A DNA stretch of 64,000 bases, from positions 496,001 to 560,000 of the forward strand of contig NW_003314317.1 of NCBI RefSeq assembly GCF_000143415.4. Direction: 5' to 3'. The position numbers and the translations under genes were made by a program. Numbering within the stretch: the stretch's first letter is position 1; each line of letters starts with the position of its first letter. Source of the DNA: Selaginella moellendorffii (taxonomy: Eukaryota > Plantae > Lycopodiophyta). The notes beneath the pieces were generated by a model, which was given only the letters and a program-made list of their open reading frames with translations, was not told the DNA's origin and made no database searches. Positions 10,768 through 64,000 of this stretch are shown here, piece after piece.

Positions 10768-13700
10768 TTAATTGAACTTTGCATAAGTACATAGAGTTCT
10801 GCCATGCAGAAATTCCTCCACTAGATCTCGCGCATTCGCTAGGTTCTCCTCCAGTTCCCATGTTGCTTCGCAGTGTGGAAATCCTTTCCACTTCACATGG
10901 AACTCTCTCACCTCGCGTCTTTGTCGCTTGCTCTTGCGTGCATTGAGGATGGCCTCGACTTCGTATTCCTCCTCCCCTTGGATAACCTCAGGTAAAGGTC
11001 TTACTTGGTCCTTGCGAAGCGGATCCTCAAAATACGGCTTGAGCAAGTTCACGTGGAACACGGGATGCATCTTCCCCATCTCTCGAGGAAGTCGGAGACA
11101 GTAAGCCACTTTACCGATTCGAGCCTCAATCTCGTAAGGCCCCGCGAACCTGCTTAAGGAACTCAAGATCAATTCATTTACAGGAATACATGCATTTAAC
11201 TTTGGGTCAACTTCCGGCTGATCCCACTTGGTAGCCTAAGGTTCTTGGTGTTCAGCCACACCTTCTCCTCAGCTTGGAACTCCACATCCCGACGCTTTTG
11301 GTTCATGTACTTAGTTTGCCTTTGTTGAGCCCGTTCCAAGGAATCCCTCACTAGATTCCAAATGTTGAGTCTTTCCGCCGTGAATGCCTCCACTGCGGGT
11401 AACTCTCCATGATACTCGGCCACGCTGAGTTCCACAGGACCTTCAATAGCTCGCCCATTGATGACTTCCCATGGACTCACCCCGATGCTCGAATGTGGTG
11501 AGTTGTTATAACACATTTCCGCAAGTCCCAAATGACTTACCCAATCGGTCTGGTCTCCTGAGACATAGCATCGCAAATAATCCTCCAGCTGCCTATTCAC
11601 CCTTTCCATTTGTCCGTCTGTCAAGAAGTGTTAGTGCCATCAACTTGACTTAATACCCCATACCTGTCTGTGGGTGATAGGCTGTGCTGAATTTCAACTT
11701 GGTGCGATACTGTTCTAGGAGTGTCCTCCAAAACCTACTGGTGAAGATCTTATCTCGATCTGAGATAATCTCTTCCGGCCTTCCCCGCACTCGAACCACT
11801 TGTTCAAAGAACAGCTTCGCCACACCTTCCGCATCCACTTCCGTTGTGGTGGGTATGAAATGTGCCATCTTCGAAAATCGATCCACCACCACGAATATCG
11901 CATCGAACCCCTCGCTTGGGGGTAGTCCCGTGATGAAGTCCATTGTAAGACATTTCCACGGACGATCTGGAATTGGGATGCTTTGCAACAAGCCCCCACT
12001 AGCCTTAGTCACGGCTTTGACCTGCTGACATGTTGGACATGTCTTTACATAGTCTTGGACGTCCTTAGCCATATCTGGCCAATGGTACTTCCTCTTGAGT
12101 AAGCCCATCGTCTTGGGCACTCCACCGTGTCCCGCAAGAGGTCCGTCATGACACTCTTCTAAGGCTACCTTCCTTAGTCCCCCTTCTGGAACATATACCC
12201 TCGTTTGCTTGTAATAAATGAGTCCGTTGCGTTTCGCATAGCCCGTTTTCTCTTCCGTTGGCAGCTCACCTCTCTGGTGAGCTTCCCGCGCCTCCAGATT
12301 CCTCAACAACACTTCTTGTGCTAGACCATCGTTCTCATATGCTGTCCGCACATCGTCCCAGAAGGTTGCTGTTGCGCTGGATATCGCCAACCTCAAGCTC
12401 GCTTTTCGACTTAGCGCATCTGCCACGATGTTGCTCTTCCCAGGCTTGTACAGAATCTCACAATCAAACTCGGCCAAGGCATTGGCCCACCGACCTTGTT
12501 TCCCTCTCAGGTCGGGTTGTGACAAGAAGTGTTTCGTTGCCACATTGTCCGTGTAAACCTTGAAGTGTCTCCCAAGGTAGTGTCGCCACTCCTTGAGCGC
12601 CTTGACCACTGCAAACAATTCCTTCTCGTGGGCAGGCCACTTCCGTTGAGCCTTGTCCAGCTTCTTCGAGAAGAACGCTACTGGATGGTTGTCTTGCTTC
12701 AAAACTGCGCCCAACGCAAAGTCTGAAGCATCCGTGTCTACCTCGAAGTCCTTACCAAAGTCCGGTAATGCCAACACGGGAGCCTTCCTCAATTTCCCTT
12801 TGAGGTGGACGAATGCCGCCTCGCATTTCGCTGTCCATACCATCTTCCCTTTTCCTGTTTGGTCCGTTAAGGGCAGGGCTACTCTTGAATAGTGTCTGAT
12901 AAACTTTCGATAGTAGTTGCATAGCCCCAAGAATGCCCTCAACTCATGTACATTCGATGGTCTCTCCCATTCCTGGATCACTTGGACTTTTTCCGGGTCC
13001 ACCTTGAGCCCGTCCTGGCCCACCACATGCCCGAGAAACTTTACCTCTTGTTGAGCAAAGTCACATTTGCTCTCTTTAGCATACAGTTTGTGTTCCCTTA
13101 GTTTTTCAAACACCTTCGCCAAGTGTTCGGCATGCTCCTCTAGCGTCTCGCTATAGATCAGGATGTCGTCAATATAGACGACCACAAAGTGATCCAGATA
13201 GGGTACAAAGATGTGGTTCATCAACGCCGAAAACGTTGCCGGTGCATTGCACAGCCCAAAGGGCATCACCAGAAACTCAAAGCTCCCATACCTCGTTCGA
13301 CAGGTTGTCTTCTCGACATCTTCCTCAGCTACCCTGATCTGGTAGTATCCTGACCTTAGGTCAATCCTCAAGAAGTATTTTGCCTTTCCCAACCTATCGA
13401 ACAGGTCCTCAATCCTTGGCAAAGGGTACTTGTTCTTCTTGGTATACTTGTTGAGCAACCGGTAATCTATGCACATGCGCATAGATCCATCTTTCTTTTT
13501 CACAAATAATACCGGCGCCCCATACGGCGACTTGCTCAACCTAACATACCCTTTGTCCACCAACTCCTCTAGTTGGCACTTGAGCTCCTTGAGTTCTTTT
13601 TCGTTCAAACGATAGGGTGGACGAACCACCGCCTCAGCACCCTCGACCAGCTCAATCTTATGTTCTATCGGTCGTGCGGGGGGCAACCCCGCCGGTAGCT

Positions 13701-15456
13701 CCTCCGGCATGGTATCCTGGAATTGGTCCAGTACCCGCTGGATCACTAAAGGTACTTCTTCCGTTCTTGTCTTTTTGTCACTCTTCACCGAGAGTAAGCA
13801 CAAAAAGGCTGCCTTAGTTCCTTTAGTGAGTTGTCCTCTCGTGGACACCAAGTTTAAGCATGACTCTTTGGCCTTGCTTTGCCCTACCATTAGATCCTGG
13901 GCCTCCACCCTAGATCTTCTTCCTTGGGCATTCGCCAATACCACAAGGTTCCTACCTTGTCCATGCAGGGCTACCACGAACCAATTAAACCAATCCATTC
14001 CGAAGATCACGTCAAATCCCGCCATGTCCAAGACGGTGAAATCCATGTCTACTTTCCATGTCCCTACTTCGACTCTCGCTTGTCGAAGTACCTCATCGGT
14101 GCTTTGGCTACCTTGAACAAACTCTATAGTCCTTGGTTCGCCTAGCCGCTGCACCGTTAGTCCGGCTTGCCGGACTATGTCTGCAGCCACAAAATTATCC
14201 GAAGCACCCGTGTCAATAAGGATCTTAACAAAGCTACCTCCGAGCTTCCCTCGGAGGGCTAGTAGATGTCGCGAACGACTCTCTACCAAAGTTGCTCGTG
14301 TAATGAGTAACTTTGAGTTAGGGACTGGATCACATACCTCAGTTTGGACTTCACCCGACTTGATGGCCATATTGGCTCTAGCCTTCTTCGGGTAGGGACA
14401 TTCCCTCGAGAAGTGTCCCGCTTCGCCGCAGTTGTAGCATACGTTGTTTCCCACGCTGCTATACGACTTAACCTTCTTATCCGTGGGTTTGTCTTTTTTC
14501 GCTTGACTCCCCCACGTACTCGCTCGCTGGCCACCGGATTTGCCTTTCCGGAACCCCGATGACTCATTCTTAGAGAAACTCTTCTTGAATTTCCCCTTGC
14601 TATACATTCCCCTTGGTTTGGCCCCTTTGCTAAATGTGGATCCCGACCCCGTCGTGTTCCCCTTTCGCAGGTTATCGTTGAAATGCACCTTGATGGCCGC
14701 ATCCAACGCTTCCTTGTAGTTGGTCGGGTTCCACCGCATCACCTCACCGCGAGCCCAGGTTTGCAAACCTGATATGAAGGCATGGAACGCATCCATATCC
14801 CCCATGTCCGTGACAAGTATCCTCTTTGCCATGAACCCATTCACATATTCCTGGATGGTTCCAGTCTGCTTCAGCCTACTCAGCTCATCTCTCAGATGCA
14901 GAGTGGCATTCGGAGGAACGTATGTTGCGCGGATCTTCGCCTTCATCATGTCCCAAGTGGCCACTGGTCCTTCGTTGGCCTCCGTCGTTCTCCACCAAGA
15001 CTTGGCATTATCTGCCAAGTATGGTTTTGCACATGGGACCTTCTCCGAGCTCGGTAATCGCAACGCTCGGAAGTAGTCCTCCATATCGTAAAACCAATCC
15101 TCCACCACTTTATAGTCGTTCACTCCCTTGAAGACCGGTGGGGGCTTTGGTTTGTACTTGGGAACTGCTTGAGGGACTGATTCCACTTCGGTTTGTTCGA
15201 CCTTGTCTGGTTTTGCCTCAGTCCCTGCCGAAGGGTCCGCACCTTCTGCGCTGCTAGCATCCGCAGTCTTTCGCTTTTTCTTCCGCTTCTCGTCACGCTT
15301 TAGCTTGCGTACGAGAGTTTCCAGCAGGGCATTGGTTTGTGCCAACTGTCCTTCTAGCACGTCCAATCGAGCCTTGGACGACCGAACCTCGCCACCGGAC
15401 TCCTGTTTGGAAGTTTCCTCACTAGAGTCCTCCTCATGCAAGGATTCCTCATCCAT
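10768..15456 (-). CDS. Gag-Pol polyprotein of element C (GAG-CCHC, PR, RT, RNase H, INT, chromodomain), interrupted by two intron-like inserts
   Basis: [34 protein letters not shown] and D..D..E integrase motifs, FAGPY, chromodomain EYEVEAIL...VKWKGF...ATWE. An upstream in-frame ATG at 15537 is cut off by a TGA at codon 8. Confidence 0.93.
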
Positions 15457-43916: not shown

Positions 43917-48453
<4,537 letters not shown>

Positions 48454-48692
48454 TCCGGGGCTATTCTTTTTAGTTGTACAGTTTTGATTGTTAATGGTCA
48501 TCAGTGACTTTATGCCACTTTAACCCTTGACTATAATTTGTCAGCCCTAATCGGACGAATAAACTTTTAGGGCAAGCAGCATTAAGGTCTAGAAGCCACT
48601 GGCTAAAGCCTAACCCTAATTTGACTTCCTTCTTTAATCCTCTTATATACAAACCCATATAAATGGGAGGAACAGGAAACATTGGAATGTAC

Positions 48693-51212
48693 TTATTTTT
48701 GACTTTCGAGTTCCAGTATGAGCTGCTCCATGGTCTTCCTGTATATTGGCATGTAGTGATCATTCACCATGGTTCGCGACAACCGCACCTTCCCATATAG
48801 CCTCCTGTTCGTCTCAAACAGTCCCACCCTCGCCTTGAATTCCTGCTCGCCACCATCGCTGCCCGAGTCCTCTGGCAGCGGCGAAACCATGTGAATCACT
48901 CGACCTGGGGGATAGAACCGATTGCGCTCTCGGCCACAGCCTTGTTCTTCCGATGGCAAAACTATGTCCCTTCCCATCTCGGTCGCGGACGCCATCACGT
49001 CCTCCTCCTCTTTGGTGATCTCCTTAGCTGCTCGCTCTTCTTCTTCCCGCCCCAGGCGATCCTCCTCCTTTTGCCGCTGGAGTTCTTCTTCCAGCTCCTG
49101 CCACAGATACTCCTCGCCAATGCTTACGTGATCCGCTGCCTCCTGGGAGCTGGAACCGGGAAATTCTGCTTCAATCTCCATTTCCTCCTGAGTCTCCACG
49201 GACCACTTTGTGTCCTCCTGAGTCTCCACGGACCACTTTGTTTCCTCCTGAGTTTCCACAGACCACTTTGTTTCTTCCACCTCGGTGAAGGTGGACGAGC
49301 ACGGAAGAGAATCCGCCTTTGGAGCCTCTTCCATTCCCCCTTCACTCTCTTTAATACTCGTCACTGTACTCGTTACTGTGTTTGCACGCCTACGCGGCCC
49401 GATGCACGCCCATCCAGACAGTCCGGTCAATCCGAGCGATGGCCGAGTCCGAACAACTGCCATTGCAACGTTCTGCGCTTGTTTCATGACAACCTGGACG
49501 CATTAAAACACGTAGTTAGAAATTGGTGCAGGACGCTGGACGATGGACGGGGGGAATGGAACTCAACGAAGTACCAGGTTGGAAAGATGACAAAGATTGC
49601 TTTGCCAGTATATCCTAACACGGTTCGTCCAAGGATAGAAGAAACCCGGAAGAGCTTCTCCGAAAAAGATGTAGGCCTAATCTTTGCTGGAGAAGGATCA
49701 GGAGAGTGGAGAAAGGGGAAAGCATTGTGTTCGTTACGGGATAGTAGATACCTGGGTGCTGCTGCTGACTGGCTTCCAGATAGCCCCCGCGCTAGCGACT
49801 CCAGTTCGCATCCTTGCCATTGATGGCAATCTGCTACTTACTGCTGTAGCAGAACGATACACTGTCCGCAAGATTCTTGTTCGTTCGATCTGCTCCTTGA
49901 AATCACTGACCCAAGCAGAAGATGTCACCTATTTCAGAAAAATGAATTTCACAGCGAAAGGGAGAAGTATGAGCAGCAAACTACTTACTTCAGCTCGTAA
50001 ATCGTCCACAGATGCAGCAGAAAACGTTGGCACCAGGTCTGAACCGTTTACGACAGACGTCACAAATGGCAATCCAGACTCCGCAAGCTCCCACGTCATG
50101 CAAGCAGCTGATAATAGTAGAATGTTAGCAAAGTCTCGGCTCTAAAAAATAGTTATCTACCAGGAGCGAAGGATACACAATTCGCTGAACTGAATTCCTT
50201 CTTCTCTCGAAGAATATACGTCAGCAAAGCAGCCGTGCCGCCGCCAAGTGAATGACCAACTATCTGGATCAAACGTAAGCGTCAAAATGGGAGTTCCAAT
50301 CACGCCTCTTACCTTTATTCGATAGCCGGGAGACTTATTTAAAGCTTCAAGCAAATGCGGAGTAGCTAGCTGAGCAATCCACCTTGCAGCAGCAACCATG
50401 CCGCAATGAGCATATCCCAAAACCAAACTTTCCACGCCTCCGTTATGCAGAACCGTGAGATGGAAGGGGACAACCGCTCCCGTGACAGCCGTTAACGTGT
50501 CCTTGATGCTATGAGTTCCACGGATGACAAGAAGTATGGATTCGGTCTTGTCATCCCTCAACACACAAAAGGCGGGCTTCAACAGCTGCACGAAAGAAAA
50601 GAAATAGCTCACTTAATCGACTAGTCCCGAAAAGAAAGAACCAACATACCGCAGCCTTCGGTTCTTGAAGAATCACTTGATCCTTAGAGAAGCCAGTTTC
50701 TTCCAGGAACAAAGGGAACGGCTTCTTCGAAAAATGTAGACATATAAGAAGCAATCGCAAGAGCTCCTTCAACGTATTCACAACCTCCAAGCCTGTAAGC
50801 TGGCAACCATCGCCAGCGAAAACACTAGCTACGTGGAGATGTCCCTGCGAAGACGAAAGAAGAGTAGCTGATTTAACAAGAAAAGCACTACTTCCACACT
50901 TCCACTTACTTGACGCCGGAGAAGGTAATTGATTCCAAACGCCAAATCCCCAATCGGCCATTTCCCAAGAGTCTCCGAGTAAGTAAACCGCAAAGTCTCC
51001 ATAATCGTGGCAAGAGCTTCCAGCCATGTCGATGGAGCTCGGACGAGCCGAGGCATCCTCAAGGAGCTGGAGCTGGAGCTCCTACTGGATTCCCCGCCCT
51101 CATCCAGCTCGCCAAATTCATCCACACCGCGCCTTCCCCATGGAATCCCCCATCTCGAGTAGTAATACAGGGCAGCTGCTCCAGCCGCCGTCGCAAGCGT
51201 CGCCGTAGCCAT
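48693..51212 (-). CDS. Class-3 lipase (Lipase3_N plus Lipase_3)
   Basis: TLRFTYSETLGKWPIGDLAFGI, IRGTHS, AHCGM, spliced IVGHSLGGG, FYPPGRVIH, DHYMP. Confidence 0.92.
49181..49278 (-). repeat. In-frame 30-bp tandem repeat (EETKWSVETQ x3) in the lipase CDS
   Basis: Three near-identical 30-mers. Confidence 0.9.
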
Positions 51213-51646
51213 CGCGCTCCAGAGCTTCGATCATCCCTCGGACATGGAGCTGTAAAGCGCGCATTCGATCGAGAGGGAGCGGTTCCAGCAGCGTAGCCTT
51301 ACCTGGAGAGATTGCAGAACCCTAGAAGCAGATCCAGCTCGCCGTGAGGATTTCGCACGGAAAATGCGATGACTCCCCCGAGAAATTCCACCGCCTTCCC
51401 TAGTCACAGAACAAACGTTGCGTCGCTTCTCCTCCGTTAGGTCTAAAAAGGTCACATATGTCCGGAGGATATCCTCCTTGGAACCGTTGGATAATCCAAT
51501 AGGGCTGCTTACGTGGGCCGTCGGATGTCGCCGTAAGGCCAAGTGTCACACCGCGAATCCGACGACCACGATTTCTTCCAGACCGGAAGTGCCACACCGC
51601 GAAATTCGACGGCCAGGATTTCTTCTAGACGGGAATCAATGGCCAG

Positions 51647-54157
51647 ATGTCGAGCAGCCTGTCGCTTCTTTGTTCCAAGCAAGGCCCACTCCACGCGTTG
51701 AGGGCTTTTGCGAGCGCTCATGTTCTTCACGTCGATAGGGCTCACAGCGAGGCGGATCTGGCACGCCAGTGCAACGATGCCAGAGATCTCTCCCATGCCC
51801 GCCAAATCCACGCTCGAATTCTCGCCACCGAGTGGCGCGGCAGCGTTTTCCTGGGAAATCAGGTTATTCATATGTATGGGCGATGCGGTAGCGTCGGCGA
51901 CGCCGATCGTGTGTTTCACGCGATGGAGCGGCGGAATCTCTTCTCATGGAACATCGTCCTCGCGGCATATGCCCAGAACGGGCATCTTGCCGAGTGTAAT
52001 GCCGGGTTCTCGAGGATTCCGGAATGGAATGTTGTGTCGTGGACGGTGATGATGGTGGCTTACACACAAAGAGGGAATGTCCAGGGCGCGAAGGAAACGT
52101 TCGATCAAATGCCGGAGCGGAATGTCGTGTCTTGGACGACCATGATCTCGCTATATGCCCAGTCAGGGCATTTCGAAGATGCCAAGAGAATGTTCTCTTT
52201 AATTCCGGAATGCACTGTGGTATCCTGGACGGTCATTTTCCAAGCCCACGTTACCAACGGCCAGATCGACAGCGCCAAAGCCGTGTTTGACGAAATGCCC
52301 GAGAGGAACGTGGTCGCGTGGACGGCCATGGTCTCGGCATATTCCAACCTCCACAGGCCGGAAGATTCGCTCGCGTGGCTCAGCAGGATGCCACAGTGGA
52401 ACGTGGTCACGTGCAACGTCATGCTGGACGGCTACGTGGCACGGGGCCTCTTTGACGACGCCGCCGCGCAGTTCCACGTCGTCCCCAAGGATGTGGTGAC
52501 GTGGAACACCATGCTGACGGCATGCACGGAGCACGGCCACGTCGACCTCGCGGTTGAAATGTTCCACAGGATGCCGCAGCACACCGTCGTGACGTGGAAC
52601 GCGATGATAGCCGGGTATGCCCGTAACGGGCATCTGGACGAGTCAAGGGCGCTGTTTGACTGCCTAGACGAACGCAACGCGGTGACGTGGACAACCATGA
52701 TTTCGGCGTACGCGCAGTGTAGATTACTGCGGGAAGCCGCGGTTCTGTTTCACGAGATGCCGCAGTTAGACGCACGGCCGTGGCACGTCATGGTTGCGGC
52801 ATATGCCGAGGCAGGGCAGTTTGACGACGCCAAGGCGCTGTTTGAGCAGTCCGACGCTCGGGATTCCACCACGTGGACGGCCATGATGGGCGCTTATGCT
52901 CACCACGGCCAGTGGGAACAATCCAAGGCCTTGTTCGATGGAATGCCGAGAAGAGCTGTGGAGCCATGGAACAATTTGATCTCGGTGTATGGCCAATGCG
53001 GCTATCTGCAAGACGCGATCGAGGCATTCCATAAGATTCCCCACCGGGACGTGATCTCCTGGAACTCGATCCTCACGGCCACCGCGCAAAATGGACGCCT
53101 GGACGATGCCGAGGAGCTCTTTCGCCAAATCCCCGAGACGAATCCAGTTTCTTACAACATCCTCCTCCAGGCGCACGCTCAATCCGGCAACATCGATCGA
53201 GCGCTCGCTTTGTTTCGATCGATGCCAGGGCTCGGGATCCTGGCGTGGACGGCGATGGTCCTGCTCTACGCCAAGACCGGCAATCTGAACGACGCGCGGG
53301 AATTTTTCCACAGAATGCCGCAGCGCGACGCCTTCTCGTGCATCACCATGATCGCGGTGAGCGCGATGAAGGGGAATCTTTCTGAATCAAACCAGTGCTT
53401 TCGCGAGATCCGCTACCACAACCTCGCGTCCTGGACGACGATGCTAGTGGCAAATGCCCAGAACGGGCATCTGGAGGTAGCGCGAGCGTTGTTTGATCTC
53501 ATGCCCGTACGAGACAACGTATCATGGAACGCGATGATCACGGGCTACGCCTCGAAGGGCCGTACGGAAGAGGCCCGGCGGATATTCGAGTCCATGCCGG
53601 AGCGCAACGCGGCATCTTTCGGCGCCATGATCTCGGCATATGCCCAGAACGGGTATATTCCCCAGGCGCGCGAGGTCTTCGAGAGTGGCGGCTCCTCCCA
53701 GCACGACGCCTGGAACGCCCTGATCGCGGCACTGGCGCGCGATGGCCACGCCGCCGACGCGATCCATCTCTCGCGCGCGATGGCGCTCGAGGGCTACGCG
53801 CTGGATGGGGAGTCCTTCACGGCCATCCTCACGGCGTGCTGCCACTCGGGCAACATTGGGCGAGGGATCCGTGAGTTTGGATCGATCGTGGATCACGGGC
53901 TGAGCCCAATTGGATCTCACTACTGCCGGATGATCGATCTCCTGGGGCGTGCCGGGGAGCTGGGCAAGGCGGAGGATTTGATCGCGGCAATGCCATTCCC
54001 GCCCTGCGATGTGGCGTGGGGGACGCTCTTGGGTGCGTGTAAGGTCTCGCCAGATGTGGAGAGGGGGATGCGAGCGGCAGGGCAGGCATTGGAACTGGAT
54101 GGCCAGAGATCCGGCCCCTATATCATGCTCTCCAACTTGTACACGAGAGAGGCGTAG
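51647..54157 (+). CDS. PLS-class PPR protein with E domain and no DYW (organellar RNA-editing factor type)
   Basis: Single 836-aa ORF with more than 20 ~31-aa repeats (RNVVSWTTMISLYAQSG), HYCRMIDLLGRAG, AWGTLLGAC, YIMLSNLY. Confidence 0.95.
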   Translation: MSSSLSLLCSKQGPLHALRAFASAHVLHVDRAHSEADLARQCNDARDLSHARQIHARILATEWRGSVFLGNQVIHMYGRCGSVGDADRVFHAMERRNLFSWNIVLAAYAQNGHLAECNAGFSRIPEWNVVSWTVMMVAYTQRGNVQGAKETFDQMPERNVVSWTTMISLYAQSGHFEDAKRMFSLIPECTVVSWTVIFQAHVTNGQIDSAKAVFDEMPERNVVAWTAMVSAYSNLHRPEDSLAWLSRMPQWNVVTCNVMLDGYVARGLFDDAAAQFHVVPKDVVTWNTMLTACTEHGHVDLAVEMFHRMPQHTVVTWNAMIAGYARNGHLDESRALFDCLDERNAVTWTTMISAYAQCRLLREAAVLFHEMPQLDARPWHVMVAAYAEAGQFDDAKALFEQSDARDSTTWTAMMGAYAHHGQWEQSKALFDGMPRRAVEPWNNLISVYGQCGYLQDAIEAFHKIPHRDVISWNSILTATAQNGRLDDAEELFRQIPETNPVSYNILLQAHAQSGNIDRALALFRSMPGLGILAWTAMVLLYAKTGNLNDAREFFHRMPQRDAFSCITMIAVSAMKGNLSESNQCFREIRYHNLASWTTMLVANAQNGHLEVARALFDLMPVRDNVSWNAMITGYASKGRTEEARRIFESMPERNAASFGAMISAYAQNGYIPQAREVFESGGSSQHDAWNALIAALARDGHAADAIHLSRAMALEGYALDGESFTAILTACCHSGNIGRGIREFGSIVDHGLSPIGSHYCRMIDLLGRAGELGKAEDLIAAMPFPPCDVAWGTLLGACKVSPDVERGMRAAGQALELDGQRSGPYIMLSNLYTREA

Positions 54158-54346
54158 ATTGTCTGTAAGGATTGATCAAAAACAGCCTGGATTTTGTCAC
54201 AGGAACTGACACATTCGTTTCTAGAAGGATGGATTGATCTAACTTCCTTTTGAATTTAACTCGATTTTAATAATTTTTTACCTTTTTTCTTTTATCTTTC
54301 TAACCATTTTTATGATTTTAACCAAATAATAAAATCAAATTTATAT

Positions 54347-54367
54347 TGTGAGGTCCATGCACTCACA
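54347..54367 (+). mobile_element. 21-bp collapsed solo LTR of family A
   Basis: TGTGAGGTCCATGCACTCACA equals the LTR start fused to the LTR end through shared TCCA. Flanked by ATAT on both sides. Confidence 0.8.
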
Positions 54368-54417
54368 ATATGATATTATTTTTATTAGGAAATCCTAAAA
54401 AGGTTCTTAAGTAAGTA

Positions 54418-55403
54418 CCTTTTGCACTCAGTTCCATAATACGTACATGCATTGCAGCTTGACTCCCCTTCCATAAGCAAGAATAATCTCGCTAATCATA
54501 GTCAGTTGTGTCACTTTGGTTTAGTAGTTTTCCTTCTGGAGATACCTACAAAGTTCCAACCTTAAGAAAAGAAGACAATTAAAAACCTCATACACAGAAA
54601 GACCCTCATACCCTTTATATCGTGAGGCCCTCCTTTAGCAACCCAGCCTTGAACATCCTCTATTTCACTCTTCACCTGGGCGTCTCCTCACCACATGTTT
54701 CAATCGCATCAGCATGCTCCGAATAGTCCACTCTTCTCACATGGTTTAAGAATTAAAACAAGCAAATGGTGTCGAGGGTATTCCTTGGGCCTTGATTGGT
54801 GAGTCTTGGATGATGATGTTGGTTCGATCAAGTTCCACGACCACCACAACTGATGCGGTCTTGTTTTAGATCAGATCTCAGGAACAGGAAGAGGAACGTA
54901 CATCCTCCGGCTCGGAGACCCTCAACGTCTATAAACGTATGACATTCATGCTTCTTTCCGTTAGCGAACAAGTGCTAGTATAGCTTTAGATAGAATTGTC
55001 AGACTGTGGAAAACGTTGGCTATCTTTATGGGGGCCCGATCTAGTGCCGCTGAGATTGCTCAACGATTTAACGCTATGTTTTGCTCTCAAACTGGAAAGA
55101 CAAGCTCGCATGCAGGTGAGTGCTAAATTCTTTGGATGCTTCTTCTTTGCTGTTTTCTTCCAAGTGTAATGAAGCAAATGGAGCTCAGAAACGTGAGCCA
55201 TCCATGAAGAAGTTAGACAAGAAGAAGCCGAGATCTAGCATGGCGGCAGCAGTAGCAAGGGGAGCAAGAGTCACAAGCGAAGGTAAGCACACAGGAATAG
55301 GATGTGAAGATAACACAATTGGGCGAGTGGTACTTAAGAAAGTAACAACAAGCAAGGCTGCGAGGAGGGAGAGGAGGAAATGTCTAGATTTCTCCCCACT
55401 CAT
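54418..55403. pseudogene. Deleted, decayed direct duplicate of 56545-58527
   Basis: Colinear blocks, e.g. 54420-54720 vs 56545-56985 and 54822-54842 vs about 57208-57228. Same novel junction at about 55215 and about 58330. Confidence 0.85.
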
Positions 55404-55429
55404 GTGATGCTTTCTATTGGCTTACCTCA

Positions 55430-56365
55430 ACGCTCCCTCGTAATCCAAGTGTCACCCAACCTAAGCCTAGTGCAGAATGAACAAATTTGTAAGGTCCTAA
55501 TGGCTTGGTGAGGATGTTGGCCAATCTCTCTCCCATAGGAACATAATCGATGTACATTACTCGTGCTTTGACTTATTCTCACACGTAATGGAACTGCCCA
55601 AGAATGTGTTTGTTGTGACCATGGAAGACTGGATTCCACGTCATTAATATGCTGCTTTGATTGTCACACCTCTTTAATTTTTGGATCAAGCTTCTTGTGT
55701 AACTAATCTAGAACATGGGCATATGTGGTGCAATTAACATGCAAAGATGTGAAATATCAAACTTCTTTCCAGACCACACTTCCTCCAGAGTTTGGCCACC
55801 TTTTAGTGCAGTGGTGGCTAAACAATTTTGCACATGCATCACCATAGCAAATGCCTTTTGCCAGAATGCCTAGCCTAATTTAGCATAAAAAAGAAGGATG
55901 CATGCTGCATTGTGTTTGATTCTTCCTCTCAGTGATACCATTTTGTTGTGGGGTGTATTGTGCAGTGATTTAGTGTTCACATGACAAAAGTCTTGAAGAG
56001 AATGGTTAAAATACTCCTTTCCACCATTAATTCGCAATGCGCTAATTTTCTGCTCTAAGATTTGTTTCAATGAAAACTTTGTAGTGTTTGAAGGTCTCTT
56101 AGCCTCGTGCTTTCCTCGCAAGAAGAATATGCATGTTTTACGATTGAAATCATCAACTAGCATCATGAAATATTTCACACCAAAGTGATTGGGAACATTC
56201 ATAGGCCCACACAAATCTGAGTGAACAAGTTCTAGTGGATATTTGTTTTGACACATTGATGAAGCAAAATTTTGCTGATGAGGATGTTTCCCTAGCATAC
56301 ATGTCTCGCAGAAGGGGTGTGTAATCTTTATCCCAAGGTTCAGCCCCATAACAATGTTTCATGTC
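55430..56365 (-). mobile_element. Ty1/copia remnant (GAG-pre-integrase/integrase)
   Basis: CETCMLGK...PLELVHSDLCGPM...YFMMLVDDF...LRINGGKEY, frameshifted. No LTRs found. Confidence 0.85.
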
Positions 56366-56525
56366 TTTATATCGGGAAGGAAGTATTGCCCTCAGTAAAG
56401 CAATTGACTGGCAAAAGGGTATTTGAGAGAAAGGCTAGGCTGAAAAAATCAATTTCTATAATTTTATATTTATTGATATTATTATTATCGCTTAACCCTA
56501 ACCGTACCACGAATTCATAAAAACC

Positions 56526-57001
56526 TTATGCCATAACTCTATACCCTTTTGCACTCAATTCCATAAGCTCTGCAAAAATTGCATCTTGACTCTCCTGCCA
56601 TAAGCAAGAATAGTTTCGCCAATCATAGTCAGTTGTGCCACTAGTTTGGTCCACCGATTCCAATACTTTTCCTTCTGGAGATACCTACAAATTTCCAACC
56701 TCAAGAAAAGAAGATGAAAGAAAAACAGTTGAAAACCTACCTTCTGGACCAAATACCTCACATATACATGCTCCTCATCATCCCACAGAAAGAGAGCCAG
56801 AGCCCGCATACCTTTTTCATCAGGAGGGAAGTATTGCCCTCCTTTGACAACCCAGCCCTGAACATCTTCTATATCAATCTTCACAGGGAAGTAATCCCTC
56901 TCAGTCACAGGATCGACGATGGGCGTCTCCTCGACAGAGAAATCCACCACATACCCGGGATGTTTCAACCGCATCAGCATGCTCCGGATAGCTTCTTCCA
57001 T
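56526..57001 (-). CDS. Two-exon orphan protein, about 139 aa
   Basis: Exon 57001-56741, GT-AG intron 56740-56685, exon 56684-56526 (VSPEGKVLES...GYRVMA*). Frame is open after splicing. Confidence 0.6.
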
Positions 57002-57254
57002 CTTGACAAAACCTAAAGCCTACCCTAAAGCATTTGGGCGAAAGGCTATTGAAAAATACAAGCGCTCCAGAATCATGAGCACACCGTATTTTTGTTCCGT
57101 GCAATGGTGCGGGCATCGCGCTATGCGAGGGTATTCCCGGGTCCTTGAGAATTCCAGAATGAAATGGAGTCTTGGGGCTTATTTACAAAGAGAAGATGCT
57201 AGATAACGTTCGATCAAGTTCCACGACCATGCGGCAACTCGGTGACACGGACGG

Positions 57255-58861
57255 ATGGAGCATTCCCTGGTAAAGAAAGCCTTTTCTTCGACTCAATGGA
57301 CACAATAGATTTTCAAGCCAAGACTTCTTGTGTGAATCAAAGGTGGGGTGTAACAAGCTCTTTACAGCTGATGCCACCTCTCAAAAGTGGTTCTACATCA
57401 GATCTCAGGAACAGGAACGTCCAACTGTGTATCCTCTGGCATTCGACACTCAGGAATTGTTTTCAAGTGGTTGCACACGGTTCAACTTCATTACAAACAG
57501 CTAACAGTATAACATTCATGCTTCTTTCCGTGTCCTTACCGTGTAAAAGTGATAGGATGCTATGGAGTGCTGGTACAGCTTTTGCCAGATAGAACTGGGA
57601 GAAATGCAAGTAGGCTGTGGAAAACATTGGCCATCTTTATGGAGATTGCTCAACAATCCGTTTTCAATCGTATTTGAAATGAAACAACGACCATGTGAGT
57701 TTGTCCTCCTTGGAACTCATCTCAAAAATGTGATGCAATAGTACCCTTCGTTGATCCTGGAGAGAAATCTATTGGTAATCAAGTTATGATACTGTTTTGG
57801 ATTGTTATATTGATTTGCAGTGGCTGCTTTAGGACGAACATCAAGCAGCATCCGAAGGTATACTGTTTACGTAACATTTGAACCTTTGAGGTTCGTTTGT
57901 TTTGACAGGTCTTGTTTCGTTCTACTATTTTTTTCGAGCGCGATCCTTGGTTTGTCTCGTGGAGAGAAGAATCAGTAAAGGCTGTAGTTTTTGCGTTCCT
58001 CTATGACACAAGAATTGTATTTTTATGAATCATGTCAATCTGTCTGTGACGAAGGCAAGTGTCAAATAGACCGAGAGCAAAAATTTCATTCCTGCTAAAG
58101 GAACTACGTAAACGTTGATACAATTGCTGTGGAGAGAACTTTCATCAAGCAGGTAAACATGATGTCCAGGATTTGTATGTTTGCTATGGGTGAATCTGCA
58201 GTCTCGTCGCAGCGATCTTGATGATCTGATACTTGTCATGCAGTTGATGCAATTTGAGAGCTTGACAACGATGTACATGTAATGAAGCAAATGGAGCTCA
58301 GAAACGGGAGCCATCCGTGAAGAAGTTGGACAAGAAGAAGCCGAGATCTTCCAAGCTCAGCAGCTCGGCAGCAGCAAAGGAAGGAGAGAGTCACAAAGAA
58401 AGAGAAGGCAAGGAAGGAACAGGATAACAACGAGCAGGGAGAGGAGGAAGGAAAGCAAGGTGAGGAGGGGAGGAGGGGAGTTTCAAGCTTGAGAAAACAA
58501 GGAAGAGGAAGAAAGAGGCCACTCATGAGTTTGTTTCATTGGATGAGACGTCCACGGTTCGAATCACATGGTTGTCTTCTTTCTCTTTTAAAATCTTCAA
58601 AGAGAATTTAGGGGTTTTAGCGCAGGGAGCTCGGGCAAGGGAATGCATGAGCTATGTGATCTTCATCGGCTCGATTGGTCGCGCTTTAGATCATGAGCTA
58701 CATTCATGAGGTATGGATCTTTATTGGGCTCGATCGCTTGCATTTTAGACCACGAGCTACATTCACAATCGCTACGCTTGCGAATTTGCAGAGAATATTG
58801 AGGTGTCCAGTGTGCCATTCTTGCATTCCCCGGAATTCTTTCCGGGAGTGAGATCTTCGGT
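57255..58861 (-). repeat. Inverted, circularly permuted, deleted copy of 32956-35724 (includes MHX 3' exons)
   Basis: Matches run 34979 down to 32956, then jump to 35724 and run down to 34992. Confidence 0.85.
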
Positions 58862-58956
58862 TCTTATTTTCCTTTCTATCATATGACATAGCCACGTGGA
58901 CCGTGACTATGCCACGTGGATGTCATACGTGGCAGTGTTTAAATCTTTTTGGCGGG

Positions 58957-59946
58957 ATGGTGCAAGACGGCTGGGCGCTTGCTTGCTTCTGTGATGCGCC
59001 TGATGTCCCTATCGTGCTCAAGGTAATACTGTCAATGCTAGTGAAGGAAATCCCCTAACAGCAGATCTCTGGTGCTTTGTCATGCAGGGGCAGAGCCTGC
59101 CTTTCATGGGAAGTGAGGACTATCTGATTAATCCTCTCGTCAGGCCGAGGGAAGGAATCCCCGCTCAGTTCCAGGTGTTGTTGCTCCCCAGCTTCAAATT
59201 TCAATTGCAGGTTTGTTGCTTTAGCTTTATCACAGGACGAGGTTCTAAGTCTTTTTTGGTTCTTTGTTCCAGGAATTATACAACATCAGTGCTTGTGGAG
59301 ATAACGTTCCCTTGGATGGAGCTCAGTCCCTGCTGCTCCCCTGCTTCAAATGGCAATCTCAGGTTTGCTGCTTTATAGGTTCTAAGTCATTTTTATTTTT
59401 TCTTCCAGGAATTCTCCAACATCAATGCTCGTGGAGATGACATTCCCTTGGATGGCGCTCAGTTCCTGCTGCTCCTCAGCTTCAAATGGCAGTCACAGGT
59501 TTGTTGCTTTCCATAAGCTTAGGTTCAACACAGAACGAGGTTCTAAGTTTTTTTATTCTTTGTTCCAGAAATTTTACAACATCAGTGGTCGTATACTCGG
59601 AGGTAATGTTCCCTTAGATGGAACTCGAGCTGCTACAAGCATAGTTCAAGAGTCAGATGCTTTGCTCATCATTGGCTCGACTGTAATGGTTTTACCAGCC
59701 TTTCGTCTTGTGAGGTAAGTGGTAGTGTGACTTTTCTTTGACTTGCGTTTGAATCGTTTCCCTCTGTTGCCAGTGCCACTCATAAGGGTAAAACTCGAGC
59801 CGACGAGATTGCTTGCTTTGAGATCGGGAGCTGTGTTGGTGAAGTGAGTTTGTCAATGGAACTCTCAAGTCTTGTGAGCATACATCCAATTGGCTGCTGC
59901 CCCCACAAAGGCGAGTGCATAGATTCTGAAACTCGCTATAATGTAG
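58957..59946 (+). pseudogene. SRT2: Chimeric gene or pseudogene carrying the C-terminus of an SRT2/SIRT4-type sirtuin
   Basis: GGNVPLD...ESDALLIIGSTVMVLPAFRLV and GKTRADEIACFEIGSCVGE(IL). The N-terminal NAD-binding and catalytic half is absent. Confidence 0.7.
59162..59625 (+). repeat. Three tandem exon-plus-intron units (about 140-165 bp)
   Basis: Repeated gctcagt..ctgctcc..gcttcaaat...cag|gtttg...ttccag|gaatt..caacatca..ggagataacgttcccttggatgg. Confidence 0.85.
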
Positions 59947-59978
59947 GTCTTATAACGTGTGTTTTTTTTATCGTGCAG

Positions 59979-60854
59979 GATTCAAGCCCCTCCTTGAGGA
60001 GGTGGAGAGATGTGTTCTGGGGCACAAGATCATATCCATCTCTATTCCAAGCCAGCAAAGTCAGCTCATAGAGCATGGTGAGCATTCATTTTACTCCCCT
60101 CAGAAAGCAAGATTTTCTGGTTCTATTATTTGTTTCTTGTGTAGGAACTATTGGGCTAGCACTACTTTGCAAGCAAGGATTCTTGGTTCTCTTTGATTCC
60201 TTGACAACTGCAACTGAAGGTGATGGGAGTGTTGTTGAGATGAGAAGGAACGTGCAGAAGATTGTCGAAGTAAGAAGTGAGCCAAGACTTCGAGTTGGCT
60301 TTGCTGGGGAAGTAGCTGCGTGTTGTCAACTCATCAAGCTTTTACAAGTGAAGCTGAGCAAGAAGGAGTTGACACATCATAATGCCGTCAAGTTCATGAT
60401 GAAGAAAGCAAACCTATTCTCAAGCACAGATGGCAACTTCAGTGCATCTTTCTTTGTCTACGATGAGAACACACTGGTGATGATCAAGGATGAAGGCAAC
60501 GGATTTAAGACAACAGCGCTTACGAAGGAGCAATCAGTGTTGGTCATTGGTTCCGGAGCACGACAAGCACGAATGATTCTTGCACAGCCGGTTCGAGGAC
60601 AGAACCATGGGGAAGCAGCAAGTGTGGGAGAAGCTCTTTCTTTGGGTCTCGACGCCTTTGCTCAAGCTTGTGTTGAGAATCCGGAATGTGGAGGGGATTT
60701 GTGTGTCATTGACGGCAGCAGAAACATCGACTTTGGTGGAATGGAGTTCAAGAAGGCACTTGCAAGTGCAAAGTCTAACTTTTCCTTCCAGTATGCAAGG
60801 CGAGGAGTGCAAAGAAACGCACTGAACATTAAGATTGCATTGTTTGACAAACAG
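59979..60854 (+). CDS. Divergent 20S proteasome beta-subunit-like (beta5/PBE-like Ntn hydrolase) core; extra small exons probably extend to about 61.6 kb; true start unresolved
   Basis: Intron 60078-60144 joins LIEHG to TIGLAL. D17 (FDS), VQKI, FAGEVAAC, VIGSG, EALSL, ENPECGG follow the beta-subunit pattern. Confidence 0.72.
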
Positions 60855-62929
60855 GTAATCCTCTCATCTTTAGCTCTGTCTGCTCTAGTTTTTTACTCGT
60901 CTTCTAGGAGGAAGCTGCTTCGGCCAGGGATTCTTCTGCAGAAAAGGTCCAGAGCGTCAAAGAACAAGAAAAGGTTTTCAATCCTTTTGCTATGGTTTGC
61001 TTTAGCTCAAAACCAATGTACAGGAACACAACCGAGGTGGTGCCACTCATTGCTTCCAAGAGTTCAAGCAGCATCAGAGGTAAGCTTGTTCACTGTAGAT
61101 TTCAGAACTTCAACATTCTTACAGGAGCATCACCAGCAGCCAAAACATCGACTCACGTGAATTGAAATCTATCAAAACTGTGGATGTGCTAGTAATGGTG
61201 TGTTATCCTTTTCCTTTACTTTGTTGTAGCTCAGGATCAATGTATAGGTTCAAAACCGAGGAGTCTATACGCTCGCCACTCATCGCTTCCAAGTCAATTA
61301 CAAAACAAGGGAGTTCAGCAAGCACCAGAGGTAAGCTCGTTCATAGATTCAAGGAATTCTTACCACAATACATTCTTACAGGATCATCTGGTTCTCAAAA
61401 AAGTGTTGCATGATTGTCTGGTTCTAGTGAGGGTAAGTCTCAATCTCTAACTCCAGCAGCTACACTAACATCCTTTGTCATACTACAAGCAGTGAAAAGG
61501 CTACGTGTTGGAACTGTATCTTCGAAGCATTAAGGTCTATTGAAAGTAAAATGGATGGAAGGTATGATGGATTGGAAATGTCAGATCGCAGTTAGAAGAA
61601 GAGGAACATAACCGTTAGTTCACTGAGAAGAAGAAGATAAGTGTTAGTTAAGCTAGAAGAAGAGGAAGATAACCATTAGTTCCTCAGTTGCTTCTTTGTT
61701 TGTATTTTTTACTGTCGGGTAAAGCTTTTGAGATATTTGCTTGGCCAGAGGGTCAAAATTATGATCTCACAATTTTCTATGCCCAACTGCATGGGATGGA
61801 TGACCCACGCACTCGGCTGCGAGATGGAAGAAGGGTCATAGGGAAATGAATTCCTCTCTCGATTGCAGCTGTTCTTGAAACTAGATATTGTTGACAGGAA
61901 GCAATGGCAGCAGTTCTCTACGACTGGAGTGCCGCATCACCGTCGGATTTGAAGGTAACAATCCTTTGGTCACCATCCAAAGCTTGGAGCGTTGGCAAGT
62001 ATACTCGAGCGGCATGAGCATTGGGCATTCAGCAAATTGATGCTATCCTCGGATCTTTGAGATGTATCTCAAGTGTGGGAGAAGCACTGGAAGAAATGGT
62101 ACCAAGTGTGGTATGGCCAAGGTGGTGCAAAACCAACAAGTAGCTGGGAACAAGGTAGGAATCTTTCCCTCATGAACTAGGAACTTCGATAGAGAAAATG
62201 AAAGAGAACTTGCTGCGACAGCTTTTAGCGCTAGGCCACAGAGACAATGGTCTCTGGAGGAAGAGTTGACATGAATGTCCAGCATTCCAAATTTTATTGC
62301 AAAGTGTATTATTTTAAGAGAAACTTTTCTAACAAGCTTTCAGGATCTTGTCTCCCCCTCAGTGGAGTGTGGAGGACCCGACCTCATTTAAGTCTTTGAT
62401 CATTGGAAACTTCACCTGGAAATTTGAAAAAGGAAATAGAAAAAGGAAATAGAAAAAGGAACAAAATATGTTCTGGTTAATTTATGTAATAAAATTAATC
62501 TTGTGTTTATAAATTAGAAACTGTGAGGGCCAAGTGTACAGCTACGATGCTGTATATTAATATTAGCGTAGTGGGATTTTGGTAGCCGTCGGATTGGTTT
62601 CAATCTGGACCACTCGCTCCTGTATATAAGTTAGGGTTTTTGGGCTAATGGATATGCACATTTCTGTATTCCCTTTTTATATTCCATGCACTCACATTGG
62701 TGGAGGTGAGGGGCACCTTTGATTGTCCCTGGGGAGTGCTTGGATTTAGGATTTTGGTTTAGATTTAGCTTTTGTATTGTCTAGATCTAGCTTTTTCCAT
62801 TTCCTTTCTTTTGTTCTTTCCTTTCAGGATTTTGGTTTAGATTTAGCTTTTTGCATTGTCTAGATTTACCATTTCCTTCCAGCTTTTTGTCATTTCTCTT
62901 CTTTTGCTTTTTCTTTTTCGTTCATCTTC

Positions 62930-63862
62930 ATGGCCGATCTGCAATCTCCTCCTTTGACTCTAGAGCAGCAGTTGGTTCAATTGCTTGATGCTATGCGCTT
63001 GCAATTGAACAACCAAACTCAATTGATGGTGGCATTCACGGCACGTGGTCCAACTCCTCCTGCTCTTGGTGCCAATCCTCGCGTTCGGCCGGAGTTCTTT
63101 CGTGGGAATCCTGGGGATGATGTGTACCATTGGTTCGATCACTTCATGGTGATTACTACATATCATTCTTGGGATGATGCTCGACGTTTGCGTGAGTTTC
63201 CCACGTGTCTCCAAGGGACGGCGTTGCAGTGGTACAATGGATTGAGTGCGGCCACTCGTGGGGATTGGAGTGTTCTTCCAGATATCTTCAAACGCGCCTT
63301 CAGACATGCCGACGACGGTGACGATGCCTTCCAAAAATTGCATCGTCTTCGCCAAGGGCCATCTGAGTCGGTGATGCAATTTGGCATTCGTTTCCGAAGT
63401 CTTTTGCTTCGTGCGGAGCCTAATATGTCGGAGCGGATCAAGCTAGGAATGTTGTGGCCAGCACTTCGTCAAGATCTTGTTGGCCTTGTGCATGCACTTG
63501 CTCCTGCCACCCTTGACGATGCTCTTCGCTTGGCACAACGTTATGAGACGTCGCCTCTTCCACTTCTTGCTACACGTCCTTCAGCTCCACTTTCTATGAG
63601 TGATGGTCCTGTTCCAATGGAGGTTGATGCTGCTGCTACTCGAGTCCAAGGACAAGGGCGAGGACGTGGTCATGGCCATGATGTTCATTGCTGGGCGTGT
63701 GATGAAGTTGGTCATACTTATCGGTGTTGTCGGCGCTTTCCGGATTGGCGACCTCCATTTCCTGGGTGGAGACCTTGGCGTCAGCAACGTCCCGTTGGTG
63801 CTGCTGCGGTGGAAGGTTTGGATACCGAGGTGCATTCGGGAAACGAGGAGTCGCGCGAGTAA
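62930..63862 (+). CDS. Gag of A2
   Basis: 310-aa ORF with a retrotransposon gag core (PEFFRG, LQGTALQWY, LRQGPSESV), PVPMEVDA and CWACDEVGHTYRCC knuckle. Confidence 0.92.
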   Translation: MADLQSPPLTLEQQLVQLLDAMRLQLNNQTQLMVAFTARGPTPPALGANPRVRPEFFRGNPGDDVYHWFDHFMVITTYHSWDDARRLREFPTCLQGTALQWYNGLSAATRGDWSVLPDIFKRAFRHADDGDDAFQKLHRLRQGPSESVMQFGIRFRSLLLRAEPNMSERIKLGMLWPALRQDLVGLVHALAPATLDDALRLAQRYETSPLPLLATRPSAPLSMSDGPVPMEVDAAATRVQGQGRGRGHGHDVHCWACDEVGHTYRCCRRFPDWRPPFPGWRPWRQQRPVGAAAVEGLDTEVHSGNEESRE

Positions 63863-63901
63863 TGGAGGGACCTTGCACGAATAAGTTAGTGACCCCTCCA
63901 T
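63838..63901 (+). promoter_or_regulatory. Putative -1 ribosomal frameshift signal (G GGA AAC plus pseudoknot)
   Basis: In-phase X XXY YYZ heptamer, 6-nt spacer, two interleaved stems. The -1 frame is open toward the protease. Confidence 0.75.
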
Positions 63902-64000
63902 CTTTCTTTCGGGAGTATCATCAAGGGGTTCACTTGGCACCAGTTCATCCAATGTTTACTTTCCAAGCTCGTTTTTATAACAAGAGGTCTCCTATTCTTC

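Follow-up and report, generated by a model that had tools for sequence, protein, structure and literature searches.

An expressed gene of Selaginella moellendorffii encodes an extremely divergent, constrained proteasome-type domain behind a candidate self-cleavage site

The window, a stretch of 64,000 nucleotides from the lycophyte Selaginella moellendorffii (contig NW_003314317.1, positions 496,001 to 560,000, forward strand), contains close to its end SELMODRAFT_422380 (P0010), an expressed gene with a proteasome-type domain that is under purifying selection. Public annotation of this gene goes no further than "hypothetical" or "uncharacterized" protein. It lies on scaffold GL377621.1, whose positions 543562-560000 match window positions 47562-64000 at 100% identity, and the domain of the public model is also 100% identical to that of the window. 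Translated exon by exon, the open frame extends from an ATG at 58909 to the stop codon TAG with 13 exons and 610 codons, stop-free (Table 1). A leader of ~267 residues precedes the threonine equivalent to the catalytic Thr1 of proteasome beta subunits (codon 268), which is the first residue of the domain, and the protein ends in a tail of 107 residues. The exon at 59979-60077, where the initial annotation had begun, is actually exon 7, with six leader exons before it.

Four sets of RNA data were mapped on positions 58600-61600: two contig sets of transcriptome size, each from a different study, and two runs of stranded raw reads (~110 raw reads in all). Transcriptome contigs and stranded reads cover every exon, and the first mates were all found on the minus strand, indicating RNA from the + strand under the usual stranded-library convention. 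Thirteen introns of 45-70 nt could be seen as joints in the RNA, twelve of them GT..AG and one GC..AG. The GC..AG assignment preserves the frame, and the paralogous locus L003 (LOC112344941, on GL377571.1) likewise has GC at the matching donor. The joint between exons 5 and 6 was found in a single transcriptome contig. The RNA contains both haplotype alleles, its variant letters matching exactly the residues of P0002 (RefSeq LOC9635678 isoform X2, on GL377571.1), a protein 94% identical to that of the window. Between the alleles, compared through the RNA reads, residues 1-190 showed 8 synonymous and 8 non-synonymous codons. The possibility of a contaminant was rejected on the basis of the 13 spliceosomal introns and of the position between plant genes on GL377621.1.

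The spliced message originally read from the sequence, ...QLIEHG followed by TIGLALLCKQGFLVLFDS..., was confirmed by the RNA. The intron just before the domain is crossed by 7 reads in X12 and 1 in X13, and loose ends of contigs continue into AACTATTGGGCTA. Splicing joins the G at 60077 to the GA at 60145-60146 and so completes the codon of the preceding glycine, Gly(-1). The description of the domain as one intact 710-nt exon (exon 8) followed by small exons was equally accurate, the latter being five tail exons with RNA-supported joints, and translation recovered all the residues listed at that time: Thr1, Asp17, a lysine at position 38 (VQKIVEV), GFAG, GSG, TIG, Phe at position 45 and NPECGG.

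Searches were carried out with single exons, with the public models P0002 and P0010 as proxies for the spliced protein. Exon 8 passes the gathering threshold of the Pfam Proteasome family PF00227 (27.1 against 22.4 bits), giving the match to the N-terminal nucleophile (Ntn) fold that the initial annotation had proposed to look for. P0002 (29.9 bits), P0004 (26.4) and P0003 (26.1) are also above this threshold, and P0005 (21.8), P0001 (20.8) and P0009 (19.1) fall just below it. Of the 100 clusters nearest to it in an ESM-Atlas feature search, 81 were clusters of proteasome subunits. Neither phmmer with exon 8 nor a two-sequence profile found any match among PDB sequences. A first AlphaFold2 model, based on a two-sequence alignment, was unusable (predicted local distance difference test, pLDDT, 38.6) and was superseded by one based on six family sequences (pLDDT 72.6, predicted template modelling score 0.79), in which strands and helices follow the order found in beta subunits and build the four-layer alpha-beta-beta-alpha Ntn fold. 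When the PDB was searched with Foldseek, the matches were exclusively proteasome-family chains. At the level of sequence and predicted structure, exon 8 can be identified as a proteasome-type (PF00227, MEROPS T1, Ntn) domain. A homodimer prediction (two copies, residues 1-222) scored 0.00, which is evidence in neither direction.

Canonical numbering was fixed by hidden Markov model (HMM) alignment to the archaeal beta subunit of Methanocaldococcus, equating K38 with Lys33, F52 with residue 45, G54 with Gly47, S136 with Ser129, N178 with Asp166 and C181 with Ser169. Gly(-1) and Thr1, Asp/Glu17, Lys33 and Gly47 of the oxyanion hole are all present, and invariant in the six family sequences. The second catalytic pair, Ser129/Asp166 (with Ser169), is altered: Ser136 is kept, but Asn178 and Cys181 occupy the other two positions, and the Ser-to-Asp/Asn spacing is 42 and not 37. 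Full activity requires the Ser/Asp pair, and active subunits are described as always having a Ser-Asp spacing of 37 residues; in Thermoplasma D166A abolished processing and activity, and yeast beta2 is impaired by D195N (PMC11947121). The yeast beta5 D166N mutant still hydrolyses its propeptide and still reacts with inhibitors, with lowered activity and turnover (PMC4792962). By analogy with the yeast and Thermoplasma mutants, Asn178 and Cys181 may mean that the enzyme is slow, specialised or dead.

To estimate selection, the window was aligned to L003 and synonymous (dS) and non-synonymous (dN) divergence were obtained by Nei-Gojobori counting. Exon 8 (233 codons) had dS 0.92, dN 0.17 and a dN/dS ratio (omega) of 0.19, and therefore the domain is old and constrained. 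In the leader (exons 1-7, 243 codons) dS was 0.16, dN 0.13 and omega 0.82, and the upstream introns are similar to those of L003 to the same degree as the exons, so the leader is either young or recently homogenised and its sequence nearly free to change. Its reading frame has nevertheless been kept, since the indels in exons 2-7 are all multiples of three (10 of 10, whereas beyond the exons this holds for 5 of 13; Fisher p = 0.0026). Little of the tail is conserved in the paralogue, nor is its frame preserved, exon 9 having a 14-nt gap. A decaying pseudogene, the outcome against which expression and dN/dS were to be checked, was rejected because of omega 0.19, the transcription of the gene and the conservation of the catalytic residues.

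An exhaustive HMMER profile search of 1.84 billion representative proteins returned five true relatives, all of them from S. moellendorffii, and two further word-based searches added models from this species only, a distribution that depends on how well lycophytes are represented in the protein collections. A bacterial match, P0006 (2474 aa; 7 stretches at profile positions 63-107; E 1e-10), was set aside as a probable repeat or coiled-coil artefact and was not used. As judged from these searches, the family has been seen so far in S. moellendorffii only, where it occupies at least four loci. The first is the window gene on GL377621.1 with its allele LOC9635678 on GL377571.1. LOC112344941/SELMODRAFT_406982 and 422384 are 71% identical and found on the same scaffolds as the window gene and its allele. 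SELMODRAFT_422680 and 403023 (38% identity) have domains nearly identical to each other and may be the copies of one locus in both haplotypes. The most divergent is SELMODRAFT_404515 (36%). The domain occupies a single exon in the window gene, in LOC112344941 and at the SELMODRAFT_422680 locus; SELMODRAFT_404515 has a frame change inside it, and the model for SELMODRAFT_403023 is interrupted close to its end. The searchable literature contains no mention of six locus names from this family, SELMODRAFT_422380 not among them.

In the family alignment (A2) the following elements stay unchanged in members as distant as 36% identity: Thr1, Ile2, Gly3, Asp17, Lys38, GxAG, GSG, LGLD and CGG. Gly47 and Ser129 are retained in all paralogues. 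Gly(-1) precedes Thr1 in every member, behind unrelated leaders, with residue (-2) varying by paralogue between His, Arg and Cys (HG, RG or CG before T). The distant paralogues P0003 and P0005 have D-x-x-C-G-G where the window subclade has N-P-E-C-G-G. Position 45, the main determinant of the S1 pocket, is Phe, Phe, Ala or Ile across the paralogues, a variation that hints at differing specificities.

The leaders of P0003 (residues 55-97, L002) and P0005 (residues 100-150, L001) resemble fragments of pentatricopeptide-repeat (PPR) proteins (LIDVLGRSKHLHKSKELV...), the second with a weak Pfam PPR match, and thus different members sit behind fragments of different genes. In the window gene, Tandem Repeats Finder detected a repeat at 59240-59510 (period 136, 2.0 copies, 86% matches). 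The 136-bp unit consists of a 90-nt exon plus its intron, and its copies, including a third and diverged one, have been spliced into the message in frame. Exon 5 is weakly similar to the FGxNxP...GSSLxVxPA part of sirtuins, and Thermotoga Sir2 was its only match among PDB sequences (E 0.26). Pfam gave no SIR2 match on the leader, and a word-based search with residues 100-290 of P0002 found family members only and no sirtuin. A sirtuin origin of the leader is a lead to follow and nothing firmer. The intron before the domain is present in L003 and missing in L001, L002 and L004; the Gly-Thr site of the distant paralogues is uninterrupted, and the splice-assembled site is therefore a feature of the window subclade. 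The split site coincides with the boundary between the domain and the putatively borrowed leader.

The single exon of the domain would suit either the retrocopy suggested by the initial annotation, here a copy of a host subunit that then diverged over a long time, or a transfer from a prokaryote. The ESM-Atlas fold search returned generic bacterial, plant and archaeal proteasome clusters and no donor lineage. In the tail, exons 10 and 12 look like diverged duplicates (...NRGG.ATHCFQEF.QHQ / ...NRGVYTLATHRFQVNYKTREFSKHQ). Beside LOC112344941 on GL377571.1 there are scrambled fragments 81-96% identical to exons 6-7, exons 10-11 and the end of exon 8 of the window gene, which look like a rearranged partial duplicate. 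One of them breaks ~25 nt into the domain exon.

The reading that we favour, with moderate confidence, is that SELMODRAFT_422380 encodes a functional Thr1 Ntn hydrolase of the proteasome-beta fold, one of a small and extremely divergent family, and that this enzyme releases itself from its leader between Gly(-1) and Thr1. Translation would start upstream and proceed through the ~267-residue leader, whose recently rearranged and near-neutral exons may derive from pieces of a sirtuin gene and would maintain nothing but the frame. The domain would then cut itself between Gly(-1) and Thr1 by an N-to-O acyl shift, like the precursors of 20S beta subunits, discarding the leader and exposing the catalytic Thr1. 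We infer self-release because a constrained domain and an invariant Gly(-1)-Thr1 pair stand behind unrelated leaders, because the frame of the leader is kept though its sequence is almost unconstrained, and because the triad Thr1/Lys33/Asp17 is intact, together with Gly47 and Ser129. The product would probably be a stand-alone enzyme, possibly self-assembling, and not a replacement of beta5 in the 20S core.

Several points weigh against this interpretation. The 20S beta subunits cleave themselves only upon assembly of the ring, and no partner is known here. Catalysis may have been lost with the change of Asp166 to Asn and the spacing of 42. The structural model depends on the six family sequences alone. 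In the raw runs, few reads cover exon 5. Besides, three observations leave the start codon in doubt. The allele of the other haplotype lacks one base at 58961 (in 3 RNA reads out of 8 and 6 out of 7, and in one contig), so that translation of the two alleles must begin at separate ATGs if both are to enter the shared frame further downstream. In the L003 paralogue an ATG stands 17 codons upstream of Thr1, at a position occupied by ATC in the window gene, and in the window gene the nearest in-frame ATG (SLSMELSS, 52 codons upstream of Thr1) lies in exon 6.

The main rival is a catalytically dead pseudo-enzyme or decoy, possibly left uncleaved, with its fold selected for binding or scaffolding. 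Asn178 and Cys181 at the positions of Asp166 and Ser169, TIG in place of TTT and the damage done by D166A in Thermoplasma and D195N in yeast beta2 (PMC11947121) all point in this direction, and an omega of 0.19 indicates constraint, which is not catalysis. We consider it unlikely, given that a scaffold would not need Thr1, Asp17, Lys33, Gly47, Ser129 and Gly(-1) to stay invariant at 36% identity, that the distant paralogues P0003 and P0005 retain D-x-x-C-G-G, and that the yeast beta5 D166N subunit still cleaves itself and reacts with inhibitors.

The domain had also been described as beta5-like, and the question is how far this label can be taken. Nearly all of the eleven top Foldseek matches were beta5 or beta5i chains, and structure-based identity was highest with beta5-type chains (20-22%, compared with 13-18% for the others). 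The profile of the family, in contrast, matched archaeal beta best (E 2e-4), followed by HslV (4e-3), beta6 (0.03) and beta5 (0.1-0.4). The label is thus supported weakly, as a 20S-beta-type fold tilting slightly to beta5, and the domain is not a beta5 orthologue (PBE/PSMB5). Compared with the eukaryotic 20S beta5 subunits (PBE, PSMB5/Pre2, beta5i, beta5t), to which it is ~20% identical, it has TIG for TTT, Phe for Met45, Asn for Asp166, Cys for Ser169 and an insertion of five residues between Asp17 and Lys33.

What stood of the original interpretation is a lineage-specific Ntn family; an alternative beta5-type subunit that would replace the canonical PBE in the 20S core of Selaginella, as a plant analogue of beta5i or beta5t, now appears quite improbable. 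Apart from the structural matches, the His(-2)-Gly(-1)-Thr1 junction found here is the natural one of beta5 (PMC4792962), and the leader is propeptide-like. However, the ring contacts of real subunits are strongly conserved, hardly compatible with such a low identity to any beta5, and beta5 scored worse than archaeal beta and HslV with the family profile. HMMER draws no link either, the exhaustive search having returned no eukaryotic beta subunit at E 0.001. Furthermore, position 45 and residue (-2) differ among the paralogues, and the 267-residue leader and 107-residue tail are unlike those of any beta5.

The prokaryotic relatives differ as well. The score for archaeal and actinobacterial 20S beta is marginal (19.5 bits for the NCBIfam archaeal beta model, cutoff 224), and here we are dealing with a plant nuclear gene with spliceosomal introns. 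The best NCBIfam models were those of HslV (NF003964 and TIGR03692), with 26 bits (cutoff 137) and 25 bits (cutoff 158), respectively. HslV (ClpQ) lacks a propeptide, has Thr1 directly behind the initiator methionine and comprises ~175 residues, whereas the window protein has a long leader, a 236-residue domain, an extra C-terminal helix of 20S-beta type and the CGG motif, and HslV was outside the top 50 by Z in the structure comparison. Anbu and BPH, two stand-alone bacterial homologues, were considered alongside HslV. No gene for a partner ATPase was seen near the window gene. A parallel is offered by the 22 new prokaryotic families described by Fuchs, Alva and Lupas in 2021, deeply divergent and uncharacterised branches of the superfamily that keep the catalytic centre; their survey covers bacterial and archaeal families only, and the words "Selaginella" and "plant" are absent from its text (PMC8665760).

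A non-functional chimeric transcript, stitched together by a rearranging, transposon-rich region and with incidental frame and expression, would fit the near-neutral leader (omega 0.82), the tandemly duplicated exon units, the scrambled fragments beside the paralogue in L003, the long terminal repeat (LTR) retrotransposon genes flanking the window gene and the unconserved tail, but is hardly credible for the domain, with its dS of 0.92 and dN of 0.17 and catalytic residues invariant across old paralogues, or in view of the frame-preserving indels of the leader (p = 0.0026) and of 13 introns cleanly spliced in several independent studies.

If the self-release reading is correct, a more speculative extension, which we put forward very tentatively, is that the family is a eukaryotic stand-alone protease of proteasome type in which cleavage between Gly and Thr makes almost any upstream frame usable for expression, with the domain at its end. 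The domain could then spread through the genome by joining up behind other genes, copied whole or in fragments (here possibly the sirtuin-derived leader and elsewhere PPR fragments), and afterwards cut itself free, as a self-releasing module of natural origin in a plant.

The rest of the window includes an intronless PLS-type PPR gene of 836 residues with ~60% G+C, and a product of 836 residues is also annotated in GL377621.1. There is also a Ty3/gypsy-type element with a gag-pol frame of 1268 residues, a separate gag frame just downstream of SELMODRAFT_422380, and a repeated frame of 113 residues (MVEYPYPRVRPPVCRNSARL...) that probably represents the ends of repeated elements.

Table 1 Positions of SELMODRAFT_422380 features and of other elements (window coordinates unless L003 is given)
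Feature	Position	Strand	Remarks
Exon 1	58909..59022	+	ATG 58909 is the first in-frame start in this haplotype; exon-by-exon translation, RNA depth
Intron	59023-59087	+	6+5 spliced reads
Leader exon 2	59088..59210	+	Spliced contigs and reads; in frame
Leader exon 3	59273..59362	+	One copy of the tandem 136-bp exon-plus-intron unit; splice joints
Leader exon 4	59409..59498	+	Second copy of the 136-bp unit; RNA joints, in frame
Leader exon 5	59569..59714	+	Start is the third, diverged copy of the 136-bp unit; then encodes ...GGNVPLDGTRAATSIVQESDALLIIGSTVMVLPAFRLV
Leader exon 6	59774..59910	+	RNA joints, in frame; holds the in-frame ATG nearest Thr1
GC..AG intron	59911..59978	+	Joint 59908->59977, 3 ambiguous letters; 3+2 reads, 2 contigs
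Exon 7	59979..60077	+	99 nt, last leader exon; ...SQQSQLIEH and first base of Gly(-1) codon
Intron	60078..60144	+	67 nt, GT..AG, phase 1; splits Gly(-1) codon
Exon 8	60145..60854	+	710 nt; entire proteasome-beta-fold Ntn domain, 236 residues, stop-free; RNA depth
Thr1	60147-60149	+	Exon 8
Asp17	60195-60197	+	Exon 8
Lys38 (=33)	60258-60260	+	Exon 8
Ser136 (=129)	60552-60554	+	Exon 8
Asn178 (=Asp166)	60678-60680	+	Exon 8
Cys181 (=Ser169)	60687-60689	+	Exon 8
C-terminal tail	60908..61427	+	Five small exons with four introns between, all RNA-supported; in frame
Tail exons (9 to 13)	60908-60973, 61024-61079, 61125-61197, 61248-61330, 61382-61432	+	Stop TAG 61425-61427
Intron of 3' untranslated region	61433..61492	+	Joint 61431->61492; two contigs, 1+4 reads
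Scrambled fragment	L003 5088-5522	-	Looks like part of a rearranged partial duplicate
Scrambled fragment	L003 7958-8183	+	As above
Scrambled fragment	L003 8291-8560	-	As above
PLS-type PPR gene	51647-54157	+	Intronless
Ty3/gypsy-type element	10768-15456	-	gag-pol frame
gag frame	62930-63862	+	Separate frame
Repeated 113-residue frame	8734, 21001, 25310, 27856

Few eukaryotic proteins are as conserved as the catalytic subunits of the proteasome, and specialised paralogues of these come mainly from vertebrate immunity. To our knowledge, divergent stand-alone homologues have been catalogued in bacteria and archaea only. An expressed and maintained plant family with ~20% identity to known subunits and an intact core would extend the proteasome-like superfamily by a branch in eukaryotes. 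It would also provide a natural experiment on what a Thr1 protease tolerates at Asp166 and Ser169, on whether self-cleavage can happen outside the 20S particle and on how a self-processing domain borrows the exons of other genes for its expression.
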